The position numbers and the translations under genes are program-made. A stretch of 60,641 nucleotides of DNA, filler included, from Platydemus manokwari (Eukaryota): the NCBI GenBank assembly GCA_037951405.1. It is 5 parts of 5 records of this genome, joined end to end, with 100 filler letters (N's around TTAATTAATTAA, not from the genome) between each part and the next. Parts side by side here need not be neighbours in the genome. Positions count along the whole stretch, not along the records: positions 11,487 to 23,105 come from JBBMOY010564440.1; 4 more parts are not named here. The stretch is one strand, 5' to 3'. Below the pieces are notes generated by a model. The model was not told the origin of the DNA. It did no database searches and saw only the letters and a list, made by a program, of their open reading frames with translations. Of this stretch, positions 11,487 through 24,079 are shown piece by piece (the stretch's first letter is position 1; every line of letters begins with the position of its first letter).

Positions 11487-12476
11487 AAATATTTATAATT
11501 AAATTAGATTTAATATATAAAAAAAATATATTTTGAAACATTAAAATAAAATATGAAAAATAAATGCTATAGAGTAATCTATAGCCAAATAAAATTAAAA
11601 AGTATAATCTAATCGTATTCAACCTTTGATTTCTAATTGGCAACTTTAAATATTTTAAAACTTAAAGGAAATCCAAAAAATCAAATTAAATATGAATGTT
11701 AGGAATATGTTCACAATTCATAAACTTTGTTTAAATTATTCTATACTTGGTGATATTTAAATTCATAAAACCTCTGACTAACTTGAATTAGAATAATGAT
11801 TTAAAAATAACTTAAATTTAAATGGTTATAATGATAAAATTAAATTGGTTTTCTTTCACCAAACAGACTAATAAAATTATAACTTTAATTGACTTTTAAT
11901 TTTTATAAATGATCTAGTTTTGATTTTAGAATTTATTTCATGTTTCATGACATCAAATGGTTATCGAAGACAGCAAAGTGCTTGTCCATTTTCAATGATG
12001 AACTGTTATAAAATTTTATTTAACCATTGTTCTATAAATTTTTCAATTCCACATCTACTAAATATTTCATTTATAATAGGCGAAGATTAATAATATTCGA
12101 TTTAATAAATCATTCAAATCGAGATTATTCCTGTTCGAAAATGATAAACATCGTCAAGAATATTAACAAGACAATTTTATGCGGAGTTTATCACAAAAGA
12201 GAATTTATTCTTTCAGATGAACACAAGAATTTTCCATTAAGCAGGACAGCAAACTGTTCTAGCGATAATAAAGGATTTCCACAAATCGATAGTTGGAAAT
12301 ATAAATTGGAGTCACACCATTTCAAATATCAGCAATCGTCACCTGTGATTATTAGCGGAAATTCGGGACTCCAAAGACAAAACTCCAAAATGATAAAATT
12401 GAATCTGAATCAATTGATTATTGTAATTCATATTTACAAGTTTATCTGTCTGTTGACACGGCTGGGATAATCAATA

Positions 12477-12708
12477 CGATGAGGAATAAATTTGGTTGGA
12501 ATAATTAATAATGTAATTATTTATGAATTAATATTATTATTATGTTATTGAAATTGTTTTAATAATAATTAATAAATAATAATTTATATGAAATCGATAA
12601 CACTGATCTTAATATTACAAATCGAAATAATAACAAAATAATTATAATGCAAATATTAACATAATAATATTATTTATAATTAACATAATAATATTATTTT
12701 CCTCATCG
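12477..12708. mobile_element. Possible MITE: ~230-bp AT-only core bounded by the inverted repeat cgatgaggaa / ttcctcatcg
   Basis: 10-bp perfect inverted termini. The interior is much more AT-rich than the flanks. No TSD established. Confidence 0.35.
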
Positions 12709-13409
12709 AAAGTCTGTGAGATATATTTAAACGATAAGAATATTTCATTATTCCCTGATGCATCAGTGTTCTATATTTGTGATCTATTTTAATAATCATA
12801 GCTACTCTCTAGAGAGCCATAGCATAATGTTTCACGATTTAGATAAATATAAACTGAAAACATTAAATAAAAAACTGATCAAATTCGAAATCCGTGACAG
12901 TCTCGATGATTTCTATTCTGGCTGTGCAGATATGCATTCTGACAATGAAGATTTGATAATCAATCTAGAGGAGCAATCGGCAAGCCTGCATCGAACAAAT
13001 CCTCACTTGCTCGAACAGAAGTAAAACTTTAATTATTATCACTGTAGCTATTATGACGATTTATTGATTGAGATAATACACCGATAGTATCAGATATTAC
13101 CTTGAATTTACAATTTAATTGTTTCCGCATTCATGGATTATAGGATACTTCCACCTGGAAAAACATTCACCAACATCATGAACTTTTTAATAAACACATC
13201 CATGTTTTGCTGAAATAATATTATGGAGTTTTTAATTAATTTTGATTGGTTTATCATTTTGAAAGCTAATCGATTAAGTTTATCAATCAACAATACACTG
13301 CAGAATTGAGCTTTTGGCTGACAGAAATCAAAGCAAACTTGTTCTATAAAATAAATTTCAGTTTTAAATTTCAATCTAAATCACCGAATATATTGTTATT
13401 GGTAAAGAT

Positions 13410-14420
13410 ATTAGTTGATGAGATGTTTGTACACCAATGACTTGTTGCGATATGGTCTTTAAGCAATGATTGTCATTGTGCCAATATTAAAGATTAATTT
13501 TGTGATTTAAATAAGCTGCGGTTTAAAACCTTTTCTCAGTGTTGAGTTTCATGCTCTAATCTTCTATTCGTCAATGCAATTTATCCACATCGATACTGAT
13601 CCAGTTTGTGCTTTAATCATCATCAATGGTATTCAATATATAAAATATTCTGAATAGGTGTTCTAATCCTCCATTTATTATCCAGTTGTGTTGACATGGG
13701 CTACATTTTACAATTTCTTATTTAACTTTTATTTCCATCTAGAGCCAATGCTATCCTTCCACACGCTTCTATAAGGGTTCGATTTGTTATTTTATATCAA
13801 GTAAATCAAATCGCCTTATCATTCTTAATTCTAGTTTTAAATAACAATCTTAATCAAGACATTTATTGTTATGGGTAAGGGTATTAGTCGATGAGATATT
13901 AGCACACCAATGACTTATCGTGATGTGCTCTTCAATAATTAGCATTGTGTTAATATTACAGATTAATTACATGATTTAAATAAGTTACTCTAAAAAAACT
14001 CTACAAAAATCTCAGTGTTGACTTTTATGATCTTATATTTTTCACTCGTCCATTTCTCTCGTTATCGTTGATTTCACTTATCAAAAATTTCCATCACTTT
14101 ATGGATAATAAGGCAATGTAAATGGTTTCTTGATGCTAAGATTTTTAAATAACACCAGAAAATATTTGAGCAAAAATTACCAACACTATCAGATTGGATT
14201 TGGACTGGGATTCCGAATCACTATATGCAATTTATAAACATCGATTCTGATTCAGTTTTTGCTTCAATCATGATAAATGGTATTAAATTTATAAAATATT
14301 CTAAATAGGTGTTCTAATCCTCTATATATACATCACAGTTATGTTGAACTGACCTGCATTTTTCAATTTTTTCTTTGATTCCTATTTCCATCGAGAGCTA
14401 ATAACATCCTTCGATAATAG
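13410..14420. repeat. Diverged tandem duplication (~13410-13760 vs ~13885-14410; second copy has a ~170-bp insertion)
   Basis: Shared blocks in the same order: gatgagat...acaccaatgactt, tctcagtgttga, ataaaatattct-aataggtgttctaatcctc, tatttccatc-agagc. Confidence 0.8.
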
Positions 14421-17400
14421 CATAATAAATCTATTCTATTCTTTCAAGATCCAGCACGGAATTACAAATTTGACGTGGAGATACTCTTAGAATTTCAATA
14501 AAGTGAGTTTCCAATCAGACATATGGCCAATATTTTTAATTCGATGGCAGCAGAATTTGATAATAATAGAAGTTTACTCTATGTATTTCATCATGCTTTC
14601 GATTTACAATTGTAATAAATTTATTTTTTAGAATAAATTAGATTCAATATCGAATTTGTCACAATTTAGTGATATTTTATTTAATTGGAGATTATTATGC
14701 TGAGAGGAGCTACATCGAGATCTATCCTCTAATTCATTACAGATGTGTATAAAATTTGATTATCCAATTGTTATTACCATCTAATACACTCTCATTGACT
14801 TTTCTTTGGTGTTTGATTTGATTTTTATATTTTGAAATTTATATAGGCAGACATATGTCATTACTTTCGCTCAAAATTTCAACCTAAATAATATGATTTG
14901 AATTCTGATTATAAACACTCTAAACATTATCCTTTATGAAATACAGTCCAACATCTGGTTCAAATTTCGATAAGCAGGTCGATAAAAATGACAATTTACC
15001 AACCGTAATTTACCAATTTACCAATGATGTTGCGAGCCTATTTATATGGCTTTTTATTCAGGGCTGACAATTAATACACAAAAATTATTTTTATATTATT
15101 AAATAAAAACTAATATTATTATACATCAAGACAGGGTGAGATTTTTACAATATAACAAGGGTAATAATAAAAATTCATGCAAAATATACACAAATGGATA
15201 CAATATCTTTAGATTATTGTCGCAGTGGATAGATTATTTCACAAAACCTCCTTATAATCACAAATTCATTATTTATTAGACTGTTATCCCTTTTGTGTTG
15301 GTGTGTTCTATAATTGAATTTTCTGAAAAAATAATTGATATTCAGTTTTTATATTTCAATTCAGCTATATTTGAAAATAATTCACAATATTGGTAAATGT
15401 TACTATTTGAGAATTATTTTTCTATATTTCATCATCTAAGAACAATGCTATCATTTTGCTATGAAATGTGTTTTTCCTAACATACACTATATATGGATTA
15501 CAATAAAATATTTTCTATCAATTTGTTCATAGCAGCATAACTGTTACCATTAAAATTATTATCAAAAAACTTTTTCGATTATAAACGATAACAATCACAC
15601 TATAAATATTTATGATAGCAGCTCTGATAACAATGATGTTTGACTTTCTGAACAGTATCATAGCTCTATTGTTATTTTATAAACTAAAAATTCAGCATTG
15701 CTCTATAAGTTTTTTTCAAAGTGGTTTCTTCTAACGATAACATGACTACAATCATAAAAAATTAATAAAATAATAATAATACAACTCTAATATTTATTAT
15801 TAAATAAATTATAGAATTATACCACAAATGATCTACATGAATTATGATGCGAAAATTAATCCATAGACCTAGTATTAGGAATAGGAATAGCATATTACAT
15901 TTGCAGCCACTGTTAGACTTCATAGAGGCTTAGCTTCCACAACGATTCTAATAGAGTTTTATGAAAAATCTTAGAATATTCAATTTATGTCCTTGATTAT
16001 TCTGGTTATGTTCCGTGACAAAATTAGGAATATGTTTACAAAGAAATGCCAATCAACTAGAAAACCAAAGAAAGTTATACCAACCAAGTGTAAAAAAAGT
16101 TAAAATCGAGAGGCGAGGAAATTTGGATTGCAATGGAGAGAAATTGGAAATACTTACATTGACAATGCTTCTAGAAAAATAACAGTAAGGACTGGTAAAT
16201 ATGATATGTTAACCTAAGAGAATTACGGTATTAAGTGGGCTAAGTCAACTTATTGATCTTCCTCAATGTTCTATATAGCATATATCGATTAAATCTTTTT
16301 ATTTAACACACATTCCTAATTTGCACAACAATATCTATTTCGGAACAAATTATTATTATCATAATCATTAGATTTCAGTATCAATATTGAGCCTCAATGA
16401 ATTGACTTAACTGATAAATAACAGTGAATAAATACAATCCTGACTGCATGTCACTTTCTTTGAATCGTCTTTAATAACTTGACATGGATTTTTGCATTTA
16501 AATGTTACAGAGTGCGAATTCTTTTACTCAAATGCATGAATATTTGAAACTTGTGAATTTGATGTTCAGATGAAAGTGGTCGATATTAATTTATGAATTG
16601 ACCACTTAAGATGTCAAATGAAAGTTTTATTAGAATCTCATTTATATATACGAGAGTCATTTAGAAATAAACCGAAATGGTAGCGATAAACAAAGAAGAA
16701 AAATTAAACCCCAACCATTAAATGAGTAATATCTAAGACATATCCATTGATATCAAACCGGGTCTTTGTTCCAAATACAAGGTAATGAAATATGAAAATA
16801 AATCTTTTATGACAAAATGATGATAAGAAATAATTATCTTGAGTTTTTTATTTTTTATATTTTCTATTTTCTATCGAACACAATTTTAAAAGAAAATGAT
16901 TGTACTATTAGACCTGCGATGATTTAAAATTTAGGAACGCTTAATAAATTGGTGATTAAGTTGCTTATATAGATTAGATGTTTAAATAAAATGAACTCTC
17001 TGGTTTGGAAATCCATTATTGCATGTATAAAATATAACGCAAATATTTAATGTATAAAATAGTAGGCAATTATATAACTGTGAAACACGCTAAAGCCACA
17101 ATTTATTAAATACTGGTAAATTTGCTATCTAATATTATTAAAAATCAATTGGCTGAGACAGTGTTATAATACCCGACGTCTAGATTCTATTTTTACATTT
17201 GCATGTTCTGGGATATTGGAAAACATCCTTTTCATTGAATTTTCTATCGCATTCAATTGACATTGTAAAGAAGACGATGTTTTTCTCTTCACAATTGTTG
17301 CTATCGCTCAAATATTTACTGGAAACTTTTCCTGATACATAGGCACTTACAAATAGATACTCCGATAAATAGATTAATATTGATATAATGATGTGTTCCG

Positions 17401-20152
17401 GTTTTACTTTATTTCCTGTTTTATATATATAAGATAAGTTTAAATAACTTTATATTCTAATATTTCATTTCCAAAATCAAATAAGGTTTTCATCGATCAA
17501 TGATATGAAATACTGTGAAAACTGCACTTTTCTGTGAATCACTTATTTAACCAAATATCACGATTTTATTTATTTTACGACGTTTTCCGCCTTCTCTTAA
17601 AACAAGCTCCATCTTTACGGTCACTAACAATAAGGATTTTATTGCCTAAGAGAATTGAATTACAACTTTTAGGTCTGACTTGAATCCTATAATTCAATAA
17701 CACCCTTCGTCCTGGTATGGGAATCTAGGATAACTTGTACCTTCTATCATACCTGAAAATTTCGATATGTTATTTACCATATTTTCGTTAGACATTATCT
17801 TGGCCGCCACTTCAGAATTTTCTTTTTTAATGTTGTAAATGTTGAGATGTATTGGTTTATCATTACTTGGGTCAGTGCTGGCTTGGTCATTGCACCAGTT
17901 GGATCTTCAAGATTTTTAGTGCTTGAACACATTTTACTCAACGAATTGTATAATCTAGTTGCATATCTTTTTTCATATTATCGAAGACCTTTTCAGGACT
18001 CATTTGTTGCACTTCTTGATTTTTCTATGCGATAGTATTTCTACATTGGATTGGTGTCAGATATTTACGTATATCAATAGCTTTGTAATGTTTATTCTCA
18101 AGAACAAGGATTATTGAATTTAATTATTTTATCATTTATTTGGATACTGGTTTTTGGTAATCTACTATTTTAATGTTACTATGATGTTACTAATTCTTTT
18201 GGATGGCATTCGATCTGCAAAAAGTTTCATCAGTTTATTCTTGAGATTTTTAAGATTAACCAGGTATGACATGTTTCTTGTCATTGTAAAATTCCAATGG
18301 ATTTTTACTTAGCCAGTCGTGTATTTTTTCTTCTTATATTCGATTTATATTTATCTTTGTAAGTGTAAATTGATTTGGTGTTTTTTAAATTTAATTTCAG
18401 AAAACTGGTTAATATAATTATATTTGTACGTTTGAAGCTGCTTTTAAATTAAATATAAATACGTCCAATTCAAATATAGAATATAAATAATTCAAAATTT
18501 GAGATGAGAATAAGAATGTTATTCGAAATAAATTTAAAATGTTTACTTTTTATTTTCATGGGGACTTGTATACATGTTATTTTTAAAAACTGTTTTTGTG
18601 GTTTGCATCAGTAAGAATTTATAATTTCATTTGTTTAAGTCTATTTTTTCTTACGATAAAAATGTTGATGTTACCATGGTTACTACGACAATAGTTGGGC
18701 TGAATAATATCTATGCAATGCTTTGTTACAAATTCTTCTTCATAAATCAATAGCAACCTAAATGAGAATTATTTTTACACGTTTCAAATAACGACATTGT
18801 GAAAACTTGACATACATGATTCTGTTGTCGATTATTTTCAATTTGCTATAGTTACTTGACTTCTGAGATATAGTTGTGATATTACTAAGAAATGGATTTT
18901 CAAATATCTCACCACACAATATTTTAAATTTTCTGTTCACTATCAACAATTATAAATAGTTGGTAGTAACAGCCATTCGTCATATTTTTTCTGAAGATGA
19001 GTATCAGTAGTTATACTTTATTTCTCGCTATTTATTTGTTGAGTAAGATTTTGAATTTTATGTCACTTAATATTCTTATACATTAATTTCCACACGAAAT
19101 GGAACCTAACTAATTTCCATTATTATTTCTTTAATAAATTTAAATTTTTGTACAACAACATAAGCTAAATTGGTAAGTCCGCATTTAAAATTTGTTATAA
19201 TAATAAAACAAAAAGCAAATACCAGAGTGAAAATAATTCAGATATTTATTGAGAATTCTAAATTTGCTGATTGTTAATCTAAATAATTTTTGACCAGTTT
19301 ATAATAAACTTGAAAGAAAAAAGCAAATAATTATTGTTGAACCGTGGGTACAATTTGGCGTGTTATTAATTTCAGTTTATTTGAGTTTTTCTTATTAGGA
19401 AATTGTTTGAATAGGTAATAATTATATATTATGATATGTTAAGAGACAAGTCCTAAGCAAATCGTTTAAGTAATTTATAGATTTGTTAAGACAAGTACTT
19501 TAAAGTATTTATAATCTATATAACTATTAAAAAAGAAATGATTGATAAAATAGTACTGGATTCCCTCAGATCATGTAAATAAAAGTTCAATAAGTTACTA
19601 CTTTTATACGTCAATGATTTTAAATATACCTTTATACACGGAAACGTTGGACTGAAATTCTCAATGTGCAAATTCAATATCGAAGTTAATGGACCAAACT
19701 AGACCCTTAGTAATATTGGGTACGTGGCCTTTTCAAGATGGTTTTTCCGAGGTAGGCTCGTTGAATAGGGGGAATATATGATATAACACACTAAATGTAT
19801 TTGAGACTTAATTATCTTACGTGATAAGAATATTTTTTATTCTCAACGTATATCATTATAGGGCATATAATTGATGGCAAAATCAATCTTCGTCAATTAA
19901 CACACTATAGATTGTAGTGGTTTCTTACAGGCAGTTGTAGGGGCATTTAATTTTTTTACTGCCTTATATATATGGTTGCTGGGTCATGGGATAAATATGA
20001 GTTTGAATAAAAATGCGCGTTTGATTTCATTTTTATTGTGACGATATTTCACAAATTTAATGGGATTATTCTCCACACGGGTATTATTATTTTTGATATT
20101 TTAAAATACGGGTGATAATAAGTCTTGTTAAATAAATACTTTTGATCACAGG

Positions 20153-22581
20153 ATGAAAATAATTTTTTATTATATTTTATTGTCCAATTTACCATAAAAC
20201 AGTATTTAGATATTTCATTGATCGATGAAAAGATTCAGACACACAGTAATATAAAAACATTAAAATTGACCAATTGCTATGGATAACAAAAATTCCTAAG
20301 TATAGTGAGACAATTTTAAATATATAGTTTTAAATAACTACTACGTTGCTTGGAAATATTGTCTTCCAAAGTAAAAGATTAAATAATTTAAAAGTTTGTA
20401 GAATCTTCTCTTTAAATAATTGATTAATAATATGGAATATAAAACAAGTTAGATATTTTACTTTAGATGATGTCAATTATTTTTAGATTGCTCTCGAAGC
20501 ATTGCAATCAACTGCAGCGTTTGTCAAAGCTGTATTGAAAGTAAAATGCAAGTCCAATCTAATTGCTCATTTTGTGTATCAACATTACATAGAAAACCAG
20601 GAATGAAATTTAATACGATAAATAAATATTGTTCATCGAATTGTAAACCACCAGTTTTTGATAAAAATAAAACGATTATTTGTTGCAGCACCGATCATTG
20701 TAATGACAACAATACTGATTATTCCACTGATTTAAGTAAGAATTTCAGATATTTATAAACGAGGTATTAAATTGAAAAATATGAATAATGATAAATTCGA
20801 AATGCAATTATGAATGTTACAAATAACGATATTTTGCTTAAGACAAATTGGTGTTTTATCGATTATATTTATATTTATTCATTAATTAATGATTTTTACC
20901 TTATATTAATATTAAACTTTTCAAATATGGTTACTTGTATATTATTTCAAGTAATATCATTGTCAAATGAAATTTCTAGAAATTACTGTTATTGATTTTA
21001 GAGTTTATTTATTACATTTTTAATTTAAAATTTGTTACCATTTTAGATTTACATTATCTACTTCGGTGTTGGGCTTGCGTCAATTGCAATGGAATTCGAT
21101 TCGGAATTTACAGAGATTGCAAGTTTTGTCTATTAACAGAGAAAACATTAGATGCAGCAAATAAGAAAAAGACACAATCGGGTTCGTGTGTTGAAAGATG
21201 CGACGAAAGCATTGCAGATTCAACAACATCATTTGTTTGTTGCAATTTCGATCAATGCAATTTCAAAAACTTGCCCAGTGATTTTCATAATTTAATTATT
21301 ATTTTGTGATCAATTCATATATACAATTAAAGATTTTATTGGTTTACCATTTTTAATAACAAAAATCTATTTTTAGGATATCCAGGTATTGTTTGTTGGG
21401 AATGCCAAAATTGCACTTACAGTGACAAAAGACGTCACTTTCTCAGTAATTCCTCGTATTGTTTAACTGAGATAAAACGAGATCAACAAAATAGAATCAC
21501 GCTTCACCAAATCTGTTCAAAGACCTGTCAGTTGTCCAAATCCAACAATTCATCTGTTATATCTTGTTGCAATTATTATTTTTGCAATTCTTATAAGAAA
21601 GAGAACATAACATGTTAGTTTTCGTTTGTTATTTAATGAATTTTTCCGATAAACATTGGACTTAGGAAAACAAAACAGGTTTGATTCAGTAATATTAATG
21701 CTTTTGTTTTTAATATCTTAATTCTGAAATAGATGGCTATCAAAGAAATCACAAATACATTATTTTAAAGAAAATCTTTTATAAATTCTAGAAATAATTG
21801 TCAAAGAAAAAGTGTTAAGTCAAATCTTAAATTGATTTAACTGTTTTTGATAAAATAACATCACATAAATATCGATGGCATATAATAATGAAATCAGTGT
21901 AATAAGCACAAAATCATCTCATGTCGTACGAATAATCATGACCATCTCCTAGTAATAATTTTTACTATAAATACATGCCTTAATTTATTATTACCAATAT
22001 TCCCGCAATTCCCCGAGATTTTTTTTCTCAAAAGTCAATAACTATTTATAAGTATCATTATCAAAAGCTTATAAGTTTTTATCACATTGAGATAGAGAAA
22101 AAATATCGATAATGCTTTGTTTTATTTAGACTGGCCACTCAATGAAAATATAAGTTGTAAAGTTTGTCAGAATTGTGGCGAAATCGATATTATCCAAATC
22201 AATAAAAATTGCTCAGTATGCATGACAACTTCGAGTAAATCTGAAGTTTATTTTAATGAAAAGTTTTCTACAAAATTATGTTTGAAAAAGTGTCCAATAA
22301 ATAATTCAAAAAACAATCGAACAATATGTTGTAACACAAATTACTGCAATGAAGAAGTTCCTGGATTCTTGAAAGGTAAGAAATAATTTTATGTGTTAAC
22401 TCGATATGATAAGCGATTCTATTTAGTGTTTCATTATACATAAGAATCAAATAATAATTTGTTATTAACTGTTATAAAGATATCCTTGACTAAAGGAAGG
22501 AAATTTTATTTTATATTTTGATAATGGAGTTAAGTATGATAAATATTTGAAATAACGTTACCCTCATGATTTTTGTTTATC

Positions 22582-22656
<75 letters not shown>

Positions 22657-22913
22657 ACAATCAGTTCCAAAACCGATCGAAAAAATCAACTGCGCTGCTT
22701 GCGATAACTGTGAACGAGAAGGAACAAAAATATTGATTCACAATAATTGTACATTCTGTATGACACAATTCACATGGAACAATTATACTAAACAAAATAT
22801 AGTCAGGAAACTGTGTTCATCAACATGTCCATCCAAAACTTTTGGCAAATTTGATTCTTATTCGTGCTGTACAAAAGATTTCTGCAATGACAAGAACAGC
22901 AGCTTAAAGAAAG
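20153..22913 (+). CDS. Multi-domain Ly6/uPAR (three-finger) protein, at least 5 domains. Domain exons 20487-20735, 21047-21277, 21377-21613, 22130-22375, 22665-22913; putative leader exon from ATG 20153; 3' end lost in the gap at 23106
   Basis: Each exon is bounded by AG/GT in phase 1-1 and encodes CxxCxxC...CxxC...CxxxC...CCxxxxCN, ending in the LU-domain CCxxxxCN signature. The leader MKIIFYYIFIVQFTIK follows cacAG|g. The leader-exon donor is uncertain. Confidence 0.88.
22582..22655. repeat. Perfect palindrome (AAT)n/(ATT)n, 37-bp arms
   Basis: Direct reading; centre at 22618/22619. Confidence 0.9.
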
Positions 22914-24079
22914 GTAAAATAAAATTTATAAATTATTTTCCCATAAAAAACTAATTGGTTGTTCACTATAAATAAGTTTTATTATCAAAAGAAATTTTGT
23001 TATTTTTTTATTTGATTTGATTTTCTTTAATTAACAAATTACTTTAAAACCCTGGTTAAGTAATTCAGGACATTGTTTTGCATTTATTTACAATATTAAT
23101 TATGANNNNNNNNNNNNNNNNNNNNNNNNNNNNNNNNNNNNNNNNNNNNTTAATTAATTAANNNNNNNNNNNNNNNNNNNNNNNNNNNNNNNNNNNNNNN
23201 NNNNNCTTAATATAATTAAGGGACTTATAAATCATAACTTTCTAAGAATTGTTTGTGGTTGTTGTTCAAGTTTATATTCGTATTTCCAACTTCTATCGGT
23301 ATTAAATTGTAATATCAATACACATTTTGGCAATCATTATTGTAGCTGTAATTGGTGGCCACTGTGGGCTTAGGATTCCACTGTTCAGTTGATAATAACA
23401 CTTCATTTTAGAGATATCTCATTACCTTAGTGATGAAAATCTTATTGAAAATAAAATCACATTGAGTAAGCACTGCTACGCTCTTCTTCTGGTGCTCAAA
23501 CAAAAGAGAGAAAGATCCTGGTGAAGGATAATCGATAAAAACATAAAGTTAAAACTCTTTCCTGTAGCTCACAAGACTAAATACATTTGATAGGTGTTAC
23601 AAAAAGAAGTCAGTAATAAGAACAGTTATAAGAAATAATTGGAAGTAACATAAAGTAATAAAGTAACTCAACAAAAACTTTAATAAATGTAACCAAATTA
23701 AATATCATTTCATCAATTCACATCAAATAAACTTCAGCGTTTGAAAATCAAAATCAATTATCAGAGTGATAATCATTGTCCTGATCTGAATTGAACAATA
23801 GTAGGATTGTGTTGAGTTTGTTACATTGAAATTTTGATTTATTATTTTGGTATTTTGATGCCTCATTCTTATGTAGTTAACAGGTCTGGAGAATCATCAC
23901 TGGCAGAGACATAATAATAAGTGGTTTAATTGATATTATTTCTCAAGGGGTCGCGATAATAAAAATATTATGAATGGCATTATGTCTAATATTTTGTTTT
24001 GAAATTGCAACAAAAATGTTATTTTTAGCATAATTTTTCAAGAGATTTTAAAACAGCGAGAAAACTTGTATAAATTTGT

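Follow-up and report, generated by a model that had tools for sequence, protein, structure and literature searches.

Among the vertebrate members of the Ly6/uPAR (LU), or three-finger, family, uPAR has three LU domains, C4.4A and Haldisin are also named as multi-LU proteins, and each domain that has been added keeps the generic intron-exon structure; sets of exons flanked by phase-1 introns are the norm for the family (PMC6600238). Multi-LU proteins are also reported in Drosophila, with '2 to 44' domains as printed (PMC6600238), the maximum reported in Schistosoma mansoni is the two LU domains of Sm29/SmLy6D (PMC4492491), and a survey from 2026 puts the number of three-finger proteins in one rotifer genome at 69 (PMC13719153). 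The rotifer Brachionus plicatilis has a 433-aa 'UPAR/Ly6 domain-containing protein', the hypothetical protein BpHYR1_004417 (RNA42694.1, UniRef A0A3M7T3T7, P0002 in our searches), in which a signal peptide precedes five LU domains in tandem. Here we set beside these systems a locus of Platydemus manokwari. The window, that is the whole stretch of DNA presented, measures 60,641 nucleotides (nt) with filler; we examined the part at 11487-23105 (JBBMOY010564440.1, GC 26.5%), making the searches exon by exon. We conclude that this part probably holds five consecutive internal exons of one gene on the + strand, whose product would be secreted or membrane anchored and would carry at least five tandem LU domains.

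A preliminary description of the window had listed five exons of 231-249 nt, all of phase 1-1, and we recover every one of them at the same positions with its acceptor and donor. The exons, the putative domain that each encodes and the introns between them are as follows.

20487-20735, + strand, exon E1: 249 nt, phase 1-1, acceptor ttttag, donor gtaaga; putative LU domain with 11 Cys
20736-21046, + strand, intron 1: 311 nt, GC 18%
21047-21277, + strand, exon E2: 231 nt, phase 1-1, acceptor attttag, donor gtgatt; putative LU domain with 10 Cys
21278-21376, + strand, intron 2: 99 nt, GC 16%
21377-21613, + strand, exon E3: 237 nt, phase 1-1, donor gttagt; putative LU domain with 9 Cys
21614-22129, + strand, intron 3: 516 nt, GC 24%
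22130-22375, + strand, exon E4: 246 nt, phase 1-1, donor gtaaga; putative LU domain with 10 Cys
22376-22664, + strand, intron 4: 289 nt, GC 17%; contains an (ATA)n(ATT)n palindromic microsatellite at 22582-22655
22665-22913, + strand, exon E5: 249 nt, phase 1-1, donor gtaaaa; putative LU domain with 10 Cys

A T-rich tract with AG precedes each of the five exons and GT follows each, and all ten splice sites are canonical. The first two bases of every exon complete a codon and its last base opens the next, which gives the same phase in five of five; the codons formed at the junctions between neighbouring exons would specify N, R, Y and V, and the linkers between the domains would be 11-17 residues long. 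The open frames end 1-13 codons beyond the donors and 2-22 codons ahead of the acceptors in all five exons, and the exons (29-36% GC) stand apart from the four introns (16-24%). E3 is missing from the start-codon-based list of open reading frames (ORFs), as had been remarked before, and its stop-to-stop frame comprises 95 codons. The phase-1 donor at the end of E5 is open and lies 192 nt from the edge of the part at 23105; at least one more exon must therefore lie beyond the part, and the gene continues past 23105. In the same way, the phase-1 start of E1 requires an exon upstream.

Each exon encodes a module of about 80 residues with the scaffold C-x2-C-x2-C-x10-12-C-x2-C-x18-19-C-x3-C-x11-12-CC-x4-CN. 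This full pattern occurs five times in the part, against a mean of 0.0 over 300 shuffles, which bears out the compact CxxCxxC...CCxxxxCN scaffold that had been claimed for each exon; CCxxxxCN alone also occurs five times, against 0.02 expected from the shuffles. A sixth LU module, intact or degenerate, was found on neither strand of 11487-23105. LU domains have been defined by at least 10 Cys within 60-110 residues, C1-x-x-C2, adjacent C8-C9, C9-x3-5-C10 and C10-N (PMC4492491). E1, E2, E4 and E5 show all of these features, and E3 shows all except one: within 76-82 residues there are 11 Cys in E1, 10 in each of E2, E4 and E5, and 9 in E3. The CC-x4-CN element is invariant in all five exons, and C1-x-x-C2 is likewise present in all five, extended to C-x2-C-x2-C. 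The phase-1 flanks that are the norm for the family are also found in five of five.

In the consensus LU arrangement, as in CD59, the cysteines pair 1-5, 2-3, 4-6, 7-8 and 9-10, and at the level of sequence the order and spacing of the cysteines of the window are compatible with this pairing. Of these bonds, 7-8 and 9-10 are named in PMC6600238. Of the 50 canonical cysteine positions, 49 are retained. The missing one is Cys4 of E3, which is replaced by Ser (TCC), one base from a Cys codon (TGY; codons at 21448-21462). Since E3 lacks Cys4, its Cys6 would have no partner under the consensus pairing. E1 has an extra Cys (20489-20491), eight residues ahead of its Cys1, and the total over the five exons is 50, an even number. 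An inter-domain disulfide between the extra Cys of E1 and Cys6 of E3 is possible, although this is purely speculative; alternatively, the change of Cys4 to Ser in E3 could reflect a decaying exon or an error in base calling.

The five domains are clearly related and strongly diverged. In pairwise BLASTP comparisons they share 25-39% identity with E values of 2e-18 to 3e-8 (E2 against E5, E 2e-11). The preliminary description had seen 'almost no similarity between the cysteines'; the divergence is real, and the wording slightly overstates it. In the domain tree, 10 of the 13 inner branches are left open, and the tree does not decide whether the domains of the window were duplicated within this lineage. 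The array would most likely go back to an ancient duplication, within the gene, of a symmetric phase-1 exon, after which the copies diverged for a long time to the identities given above.

The assignment of the exons as three-finger (LU) domains is supported, because of matches of their profile to known structures in the PDB, the result of an independent LU profile and the structural matches of the modelled E5; for E5, it is the fold itself that the modelling supports. When a profile of the five domains was compared with the sequences of the PDB, SLURP-2 (2n99, E 7e-4) and Lynx1 (2l03, E 9e-4) ranked highest, and snake three-finger toxins, GPIHBP1 and the ectodomains of BMP receptors followed as lower matches. 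SLURP-2 is a secreted isoform of Lynx1. The independent profile was made from annotated rotifer and flatworm LU domains without any sequence of the window and was run over 375 open pieces. It picks exactly the five exons (E 5.7e-11 to 1.5e-6; E1 5.7e-11, E2 1.5e-6, E3 3.5e-9, E4 5.3e-7), and the next piece has an E value of 0.4. The neighbours in the ESM Atlas all belong to UPAR_LY6/Toxin_TOLIP clusters (score 0.87), which we regard as a lead only. AlphaFold2 models were made of E1, from a five-sequence alignment, and of E5, from eleven sequences. The model of E5 has five strands, a predicted local distance difference test score (pLDDT) of 81 and a predicted template modelling score of 0.69. 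With this model, the top 50 Foldseek matches are all three-finger toxins, SLURP-2/Lynx1, uPAR or ALK2 (TMt up to 0.75), and VIA-align gives a Z score of 8.7 to the muscarinic toxin MT7 (3neq_A; root-mean-square deviation 2.9 over 63/66 residues), 8.0 to GPIHBP1 and 7.4-7.8 to the domains of uPAR, with essentially the whole domain covered.

A HMMER scan of 1.84 billion representatives found eight proteins, seven of which have the same LU scaffold. The eighth (P0008, 602 aa, E 1e-3) is a low-complexity repeat protein at the limit of E = 0.001 and is probably a false positive of a Cys-rich profile. The named matches are two Brachionus proteins, one with five LU domains and one with a single domain, and flatworm proteins from Clonorchis, Mesocestoides and Trichobilharzia. 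A word-index search with a 10-sequence alignment returned five proteins, two of them new, and added a protein from Opisthorchis; the likeness of the CxxCxxC start to flatworm Ly6 proteins, suggested at the outset, is thus borne out by matches in four flatworm genera. The same kind of protein search with E5 alone gave no candidate, and a metagenome locus scan with another alignment gave 185 pattern matches, none of which was confirmed. The nearest named relatives, rotifer and flatworm proteins, are only about 25-30% identical. E4 has a closer match in P0001, an ORF on a 530-nt ENA contig from another organism, with 49% identity over 90 residues, the linkers included. P0001 retains every cysteine and the two linkers (DWP.N... 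and ...PG.L.G), its frame is intact and the similarity stops at the donor. A match that includes the linkers and ends at the donor gives E4 the look of a conserved internal exon in a multi-domain gene.

Two features of these relatives deserve a note in their own right. P0006, a single-LU protein on a 1215-nt ENA contig, carries a hydrophobic insert of some 20 residues in loop 2, between Cys5 and Cys6, which resembles a short intron left unspliced at the place where vertebrate LU domains are split. P0003 and P0009, from Trichobilharzia szidati and T. regenti (202 aa, two LU domains), lack, in each of their domains, the Cys7 of C-x3-C as well as one of the two Cys in the CC pair, and so depart from the rule in vertebrates and Sm29, where the 7-8 bond is lost in the first domain only.

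Most of the relatives are single-domain proteins of 107-126 aa, and LU genes are commonly clustered (PMC6600238), so that the five exons might be read as a tandem cluster of separate single-LU genes instead of one gene. We consider this highly improbable. None of the exons has a start codon and signal peptide of its own; each begins in phase 1 immediately after its acceptor and needs a base from an upstream exon, and none ends in a stop codon or in a hydrophobic tail of the glycosylphosphatidylinositol (GPI) or transmembrane type. The spacers, of 99-516 nt, are too small to hold a promoter, a leader exon and a 3' end, and intron 2, which links E3 to E2, is the shortest of them at only 99 nt. 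The missing Met and signal peptide, the dependence on an upstream base, the missing stops and tails and the short intron 2 are also the reasons why we favour one transcript, and we infer that all five exons are joined in one mRNA. Spliced-leader trans-splicing onto each exon was considered and rejected, since an exon entered at a phase-1 acceptor would have neither start codon nor signal peptide.

Several observations weigh against a single functional multi-LU gene, and we set them out together. The Pfam family Toxin_TOLIP, of the clan uPAR_Ly6_toxin, is matched by E1 with 18.5 bits (E 0.0036) and by E5 with 19.6 bits (E 0.0016), below the curated gathering cut-off of 21.2, and by E2 with only 7.5 bits (E 9.5); E3 and E4 have no Pfam match. 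The model of E1 is poor (pLDDT 60.6) and its structural matches are weak, though mostly to three-finger toxins, so that the comparison with LU folds proposed in the preliminary description, which turned out well for E5 (pLDDT 81, Z up to 8.7), does not allow a judgement on E1. E3, without Cys4, has lost a core disulfide partner and could be a decaying or skipped exon. In the 9 kb before E1 (11487-20486) we found no convincing leader exon; a scan of this region gave weak candidates typical of AT-rich sequence. The 3' end of the gene lies beyond 23105. For the domain assignment, the sub-threshold Pfam scores are offset by the matches to PDB sequences, by the independent LU profile and by relatives that are named UPAR/Ly6 by their source.

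The one-base difference at Cys4 of E3, the want of a recognised leader exon in 9 kb and an upstream region that has local duplications and no recognisable gene would also suit a copy of a multi-LU gene that no longer functions or is decaying and survives as an unexpressed pseudogene fragment. It is difficult to see how such a fragment would have kept five frames intact across 1212 nt of DNA with 26.5% GC, in which stop codons are frequent, together with ten canonical splice sites and 49 of the 50 canonical cysteines, and another organism, moreover, has a conserved counterpart of E4 whose frame is likewise intact. We therefore regard decay as distinctly unlikely and retain the interpretation of the locus as one multi-LU gene.

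Intron 4 has a feature of its own at 22582-22655, where (ATA)12.7 is directly followed by (ATT)12.7 to form a perfect 35-nt A/T palindrome, whose end lies 9 nt ahead of the E5 acceptor at 22664. This acceptor is the least pyrimidine-rich among those of the five exons. In the pre-mRNA, the palindrome could form an A-U hairpin across the branch-point region.

The preliminary description had also proposed a cassette system, in which a single leader exon would be joined to different subsets of the LU exons, or to one of them at a time, to give a combinatorial receptor-like or toxin-like repertoire. Any subset of the five exons would indeed stay in frame, as all are of phase 1-1; the domains are as strongly diverged as would be expected if each had its own specificity; and the perfect A/U palindrome 9 nt before the E5 acceptor could in principle modulate the use of E5. 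The proposal had, however, been drawn from phase symmetry only, and this symmetry is generic for LU exon sets; multi-LU genes with constitutive splicing, such as uPAR, have it too (PMC6600238). The introns offer it no help: the 90 nt upstream of each of the five exons have no common selector-like or docking-like motif, no inverted repeats from intron to intron rise above the AT-rich noise, and intron 2, at 99 nt, places no steric bar on the joining of E2 to E3. The gene model of the five-LU protein of Brachionus includes all five domains. We find no support for the cassette proposal and consider it unlikely. That the LU exons are used combinatorially, by skipping or by mutually exclusive choice, so that diversified three-finger receptors or secreted ligands arise from one spiralian locus, seems to us very unlikely; if true, this would make the locus a system for generating diversity from LU domains in an invertebrate.

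In the single multi-LU gene that we favour, the exons would be spliced in order to encode an extracellular protein with about 400 residues from these five alone. The LU domain of each exon would form a disulfide-knotted β-sheet core with three loops, and the product would consist of three-finger modules in series, each folded independently, locked by disulfides and binding its partners through these loops. An extracellular location and action by protein-protein binding through the loops are suggested by analogy with other LU proteins. An N-terminal leader exon and one or more C-terminal exons would lie outside the sequence found.

An Rfam scan of 11487-23105 gave nothing, and in the 9 kb before E1 there is neither an LU motif nor a convincing exon, and the ORFs there have no Pfam match. 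The GC content of 11487-20486 is 26.8%, above that of the introns of the gene (16-24%). Within this region, 13354-14329 is a local direct duplication of three blocks, crossed by ORFs without a Pfam match.

13574-13678 and 14225-14329, duplication block: 88%
13354-13462 and 13827-13935, duplication block: 79%
13464-13531 and 13933-14000, duplication block: 76%

The locus is genuine, and as a multi-domain member of the known LU family it is fairly ordinary. The family is best known from single-domain proteins, and to it the locus adds a multi-LU gene that is deeply diverged and gives each domain its own exon; a CxxCxxC subtype of LU domain is common to the rotifer proteins, the flatworm proteins and this AT-rich genome. 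There is also a lesson for annotation: the domains escape the Pfam thresholds and E3 is passed over by start-codon-based ORF lists, so that automated pipelines are likely to under-call the gene. The locus would matter more if its exons were used combinatorially in transcripts, or if a Cys bridge between E1 and E3 were real.

The Brachionus protein is like the product of the window in that each of its domains starts with C-x2-C-x2-C, ends with CC-x4-CN and has 10 Cys, with short linkers between them. The two differ in that the five Brachionus domains are near-copies that fall in one clade (98/97 support), which points to an independent and recent expansion in Brachionus, whereas those of the window are only 25-39% identical, and in that the spacing from Cys4 to Cys5 is x7 in Brachionus and x2 in the window. 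The five-LU Brachionus protein and the multi-LU proteins of Drosophila (PMC6600238) also bear on the suggestion of an 'unusually long poly-LU surface or secreted protein': the poly-LU part is the most likely reading, but 'unusually long' is too strong. The flatworm Ly6/CD59-like proteins (SmLy6; Clonorchis KAG5454434.1, Opisthorchis, Mesocestoides A0A5K3FHG7) share the spacing of the window, including C-x2-C-x2-C and Cys4-x2-Cys5, and show the published LU features of 10 Cys in 60-110 aa, C1-x-x-C2 and C10-N (PMC4492491), but each has one domain, a GPI anchor and a length of about 110-130 aa. In the two-domain protein of Trichobilharzia (P0003), both domains lack the Cys7-Cys8 bond (C-x3-C), a pair that is kept in five of the five window domains. 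Lynx1/SLURP-2, the snake three-finger toxins and GPIHBP1 are the best matches by profile and structure, but they are single-domain proteins with about 20-28% identity. No functional residues can be transferred from the prototoxins or toxins, and nothing in the locus indicates toxicity.

The vertebrate multi-LU genes resemble the locus in their tandem domains and in exon sets with symmetric phase-1 introns (PMC6600238). They split each LU domain over two exons at the tip of loop 2, whereas the window has one exon per domain, and their N-terminal domain lacks the 7-8 disulfide (PMC6600238), whereas Cys7 and Cys8 are kept in all five window domains, of which E1 may not be the first in the protein. 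The locus thus differs from the vertebrate genes in three ways: it has one exon for each domain, it retains the 7-8 pair in every domain, and its domains have diverged strongly within a single gene.

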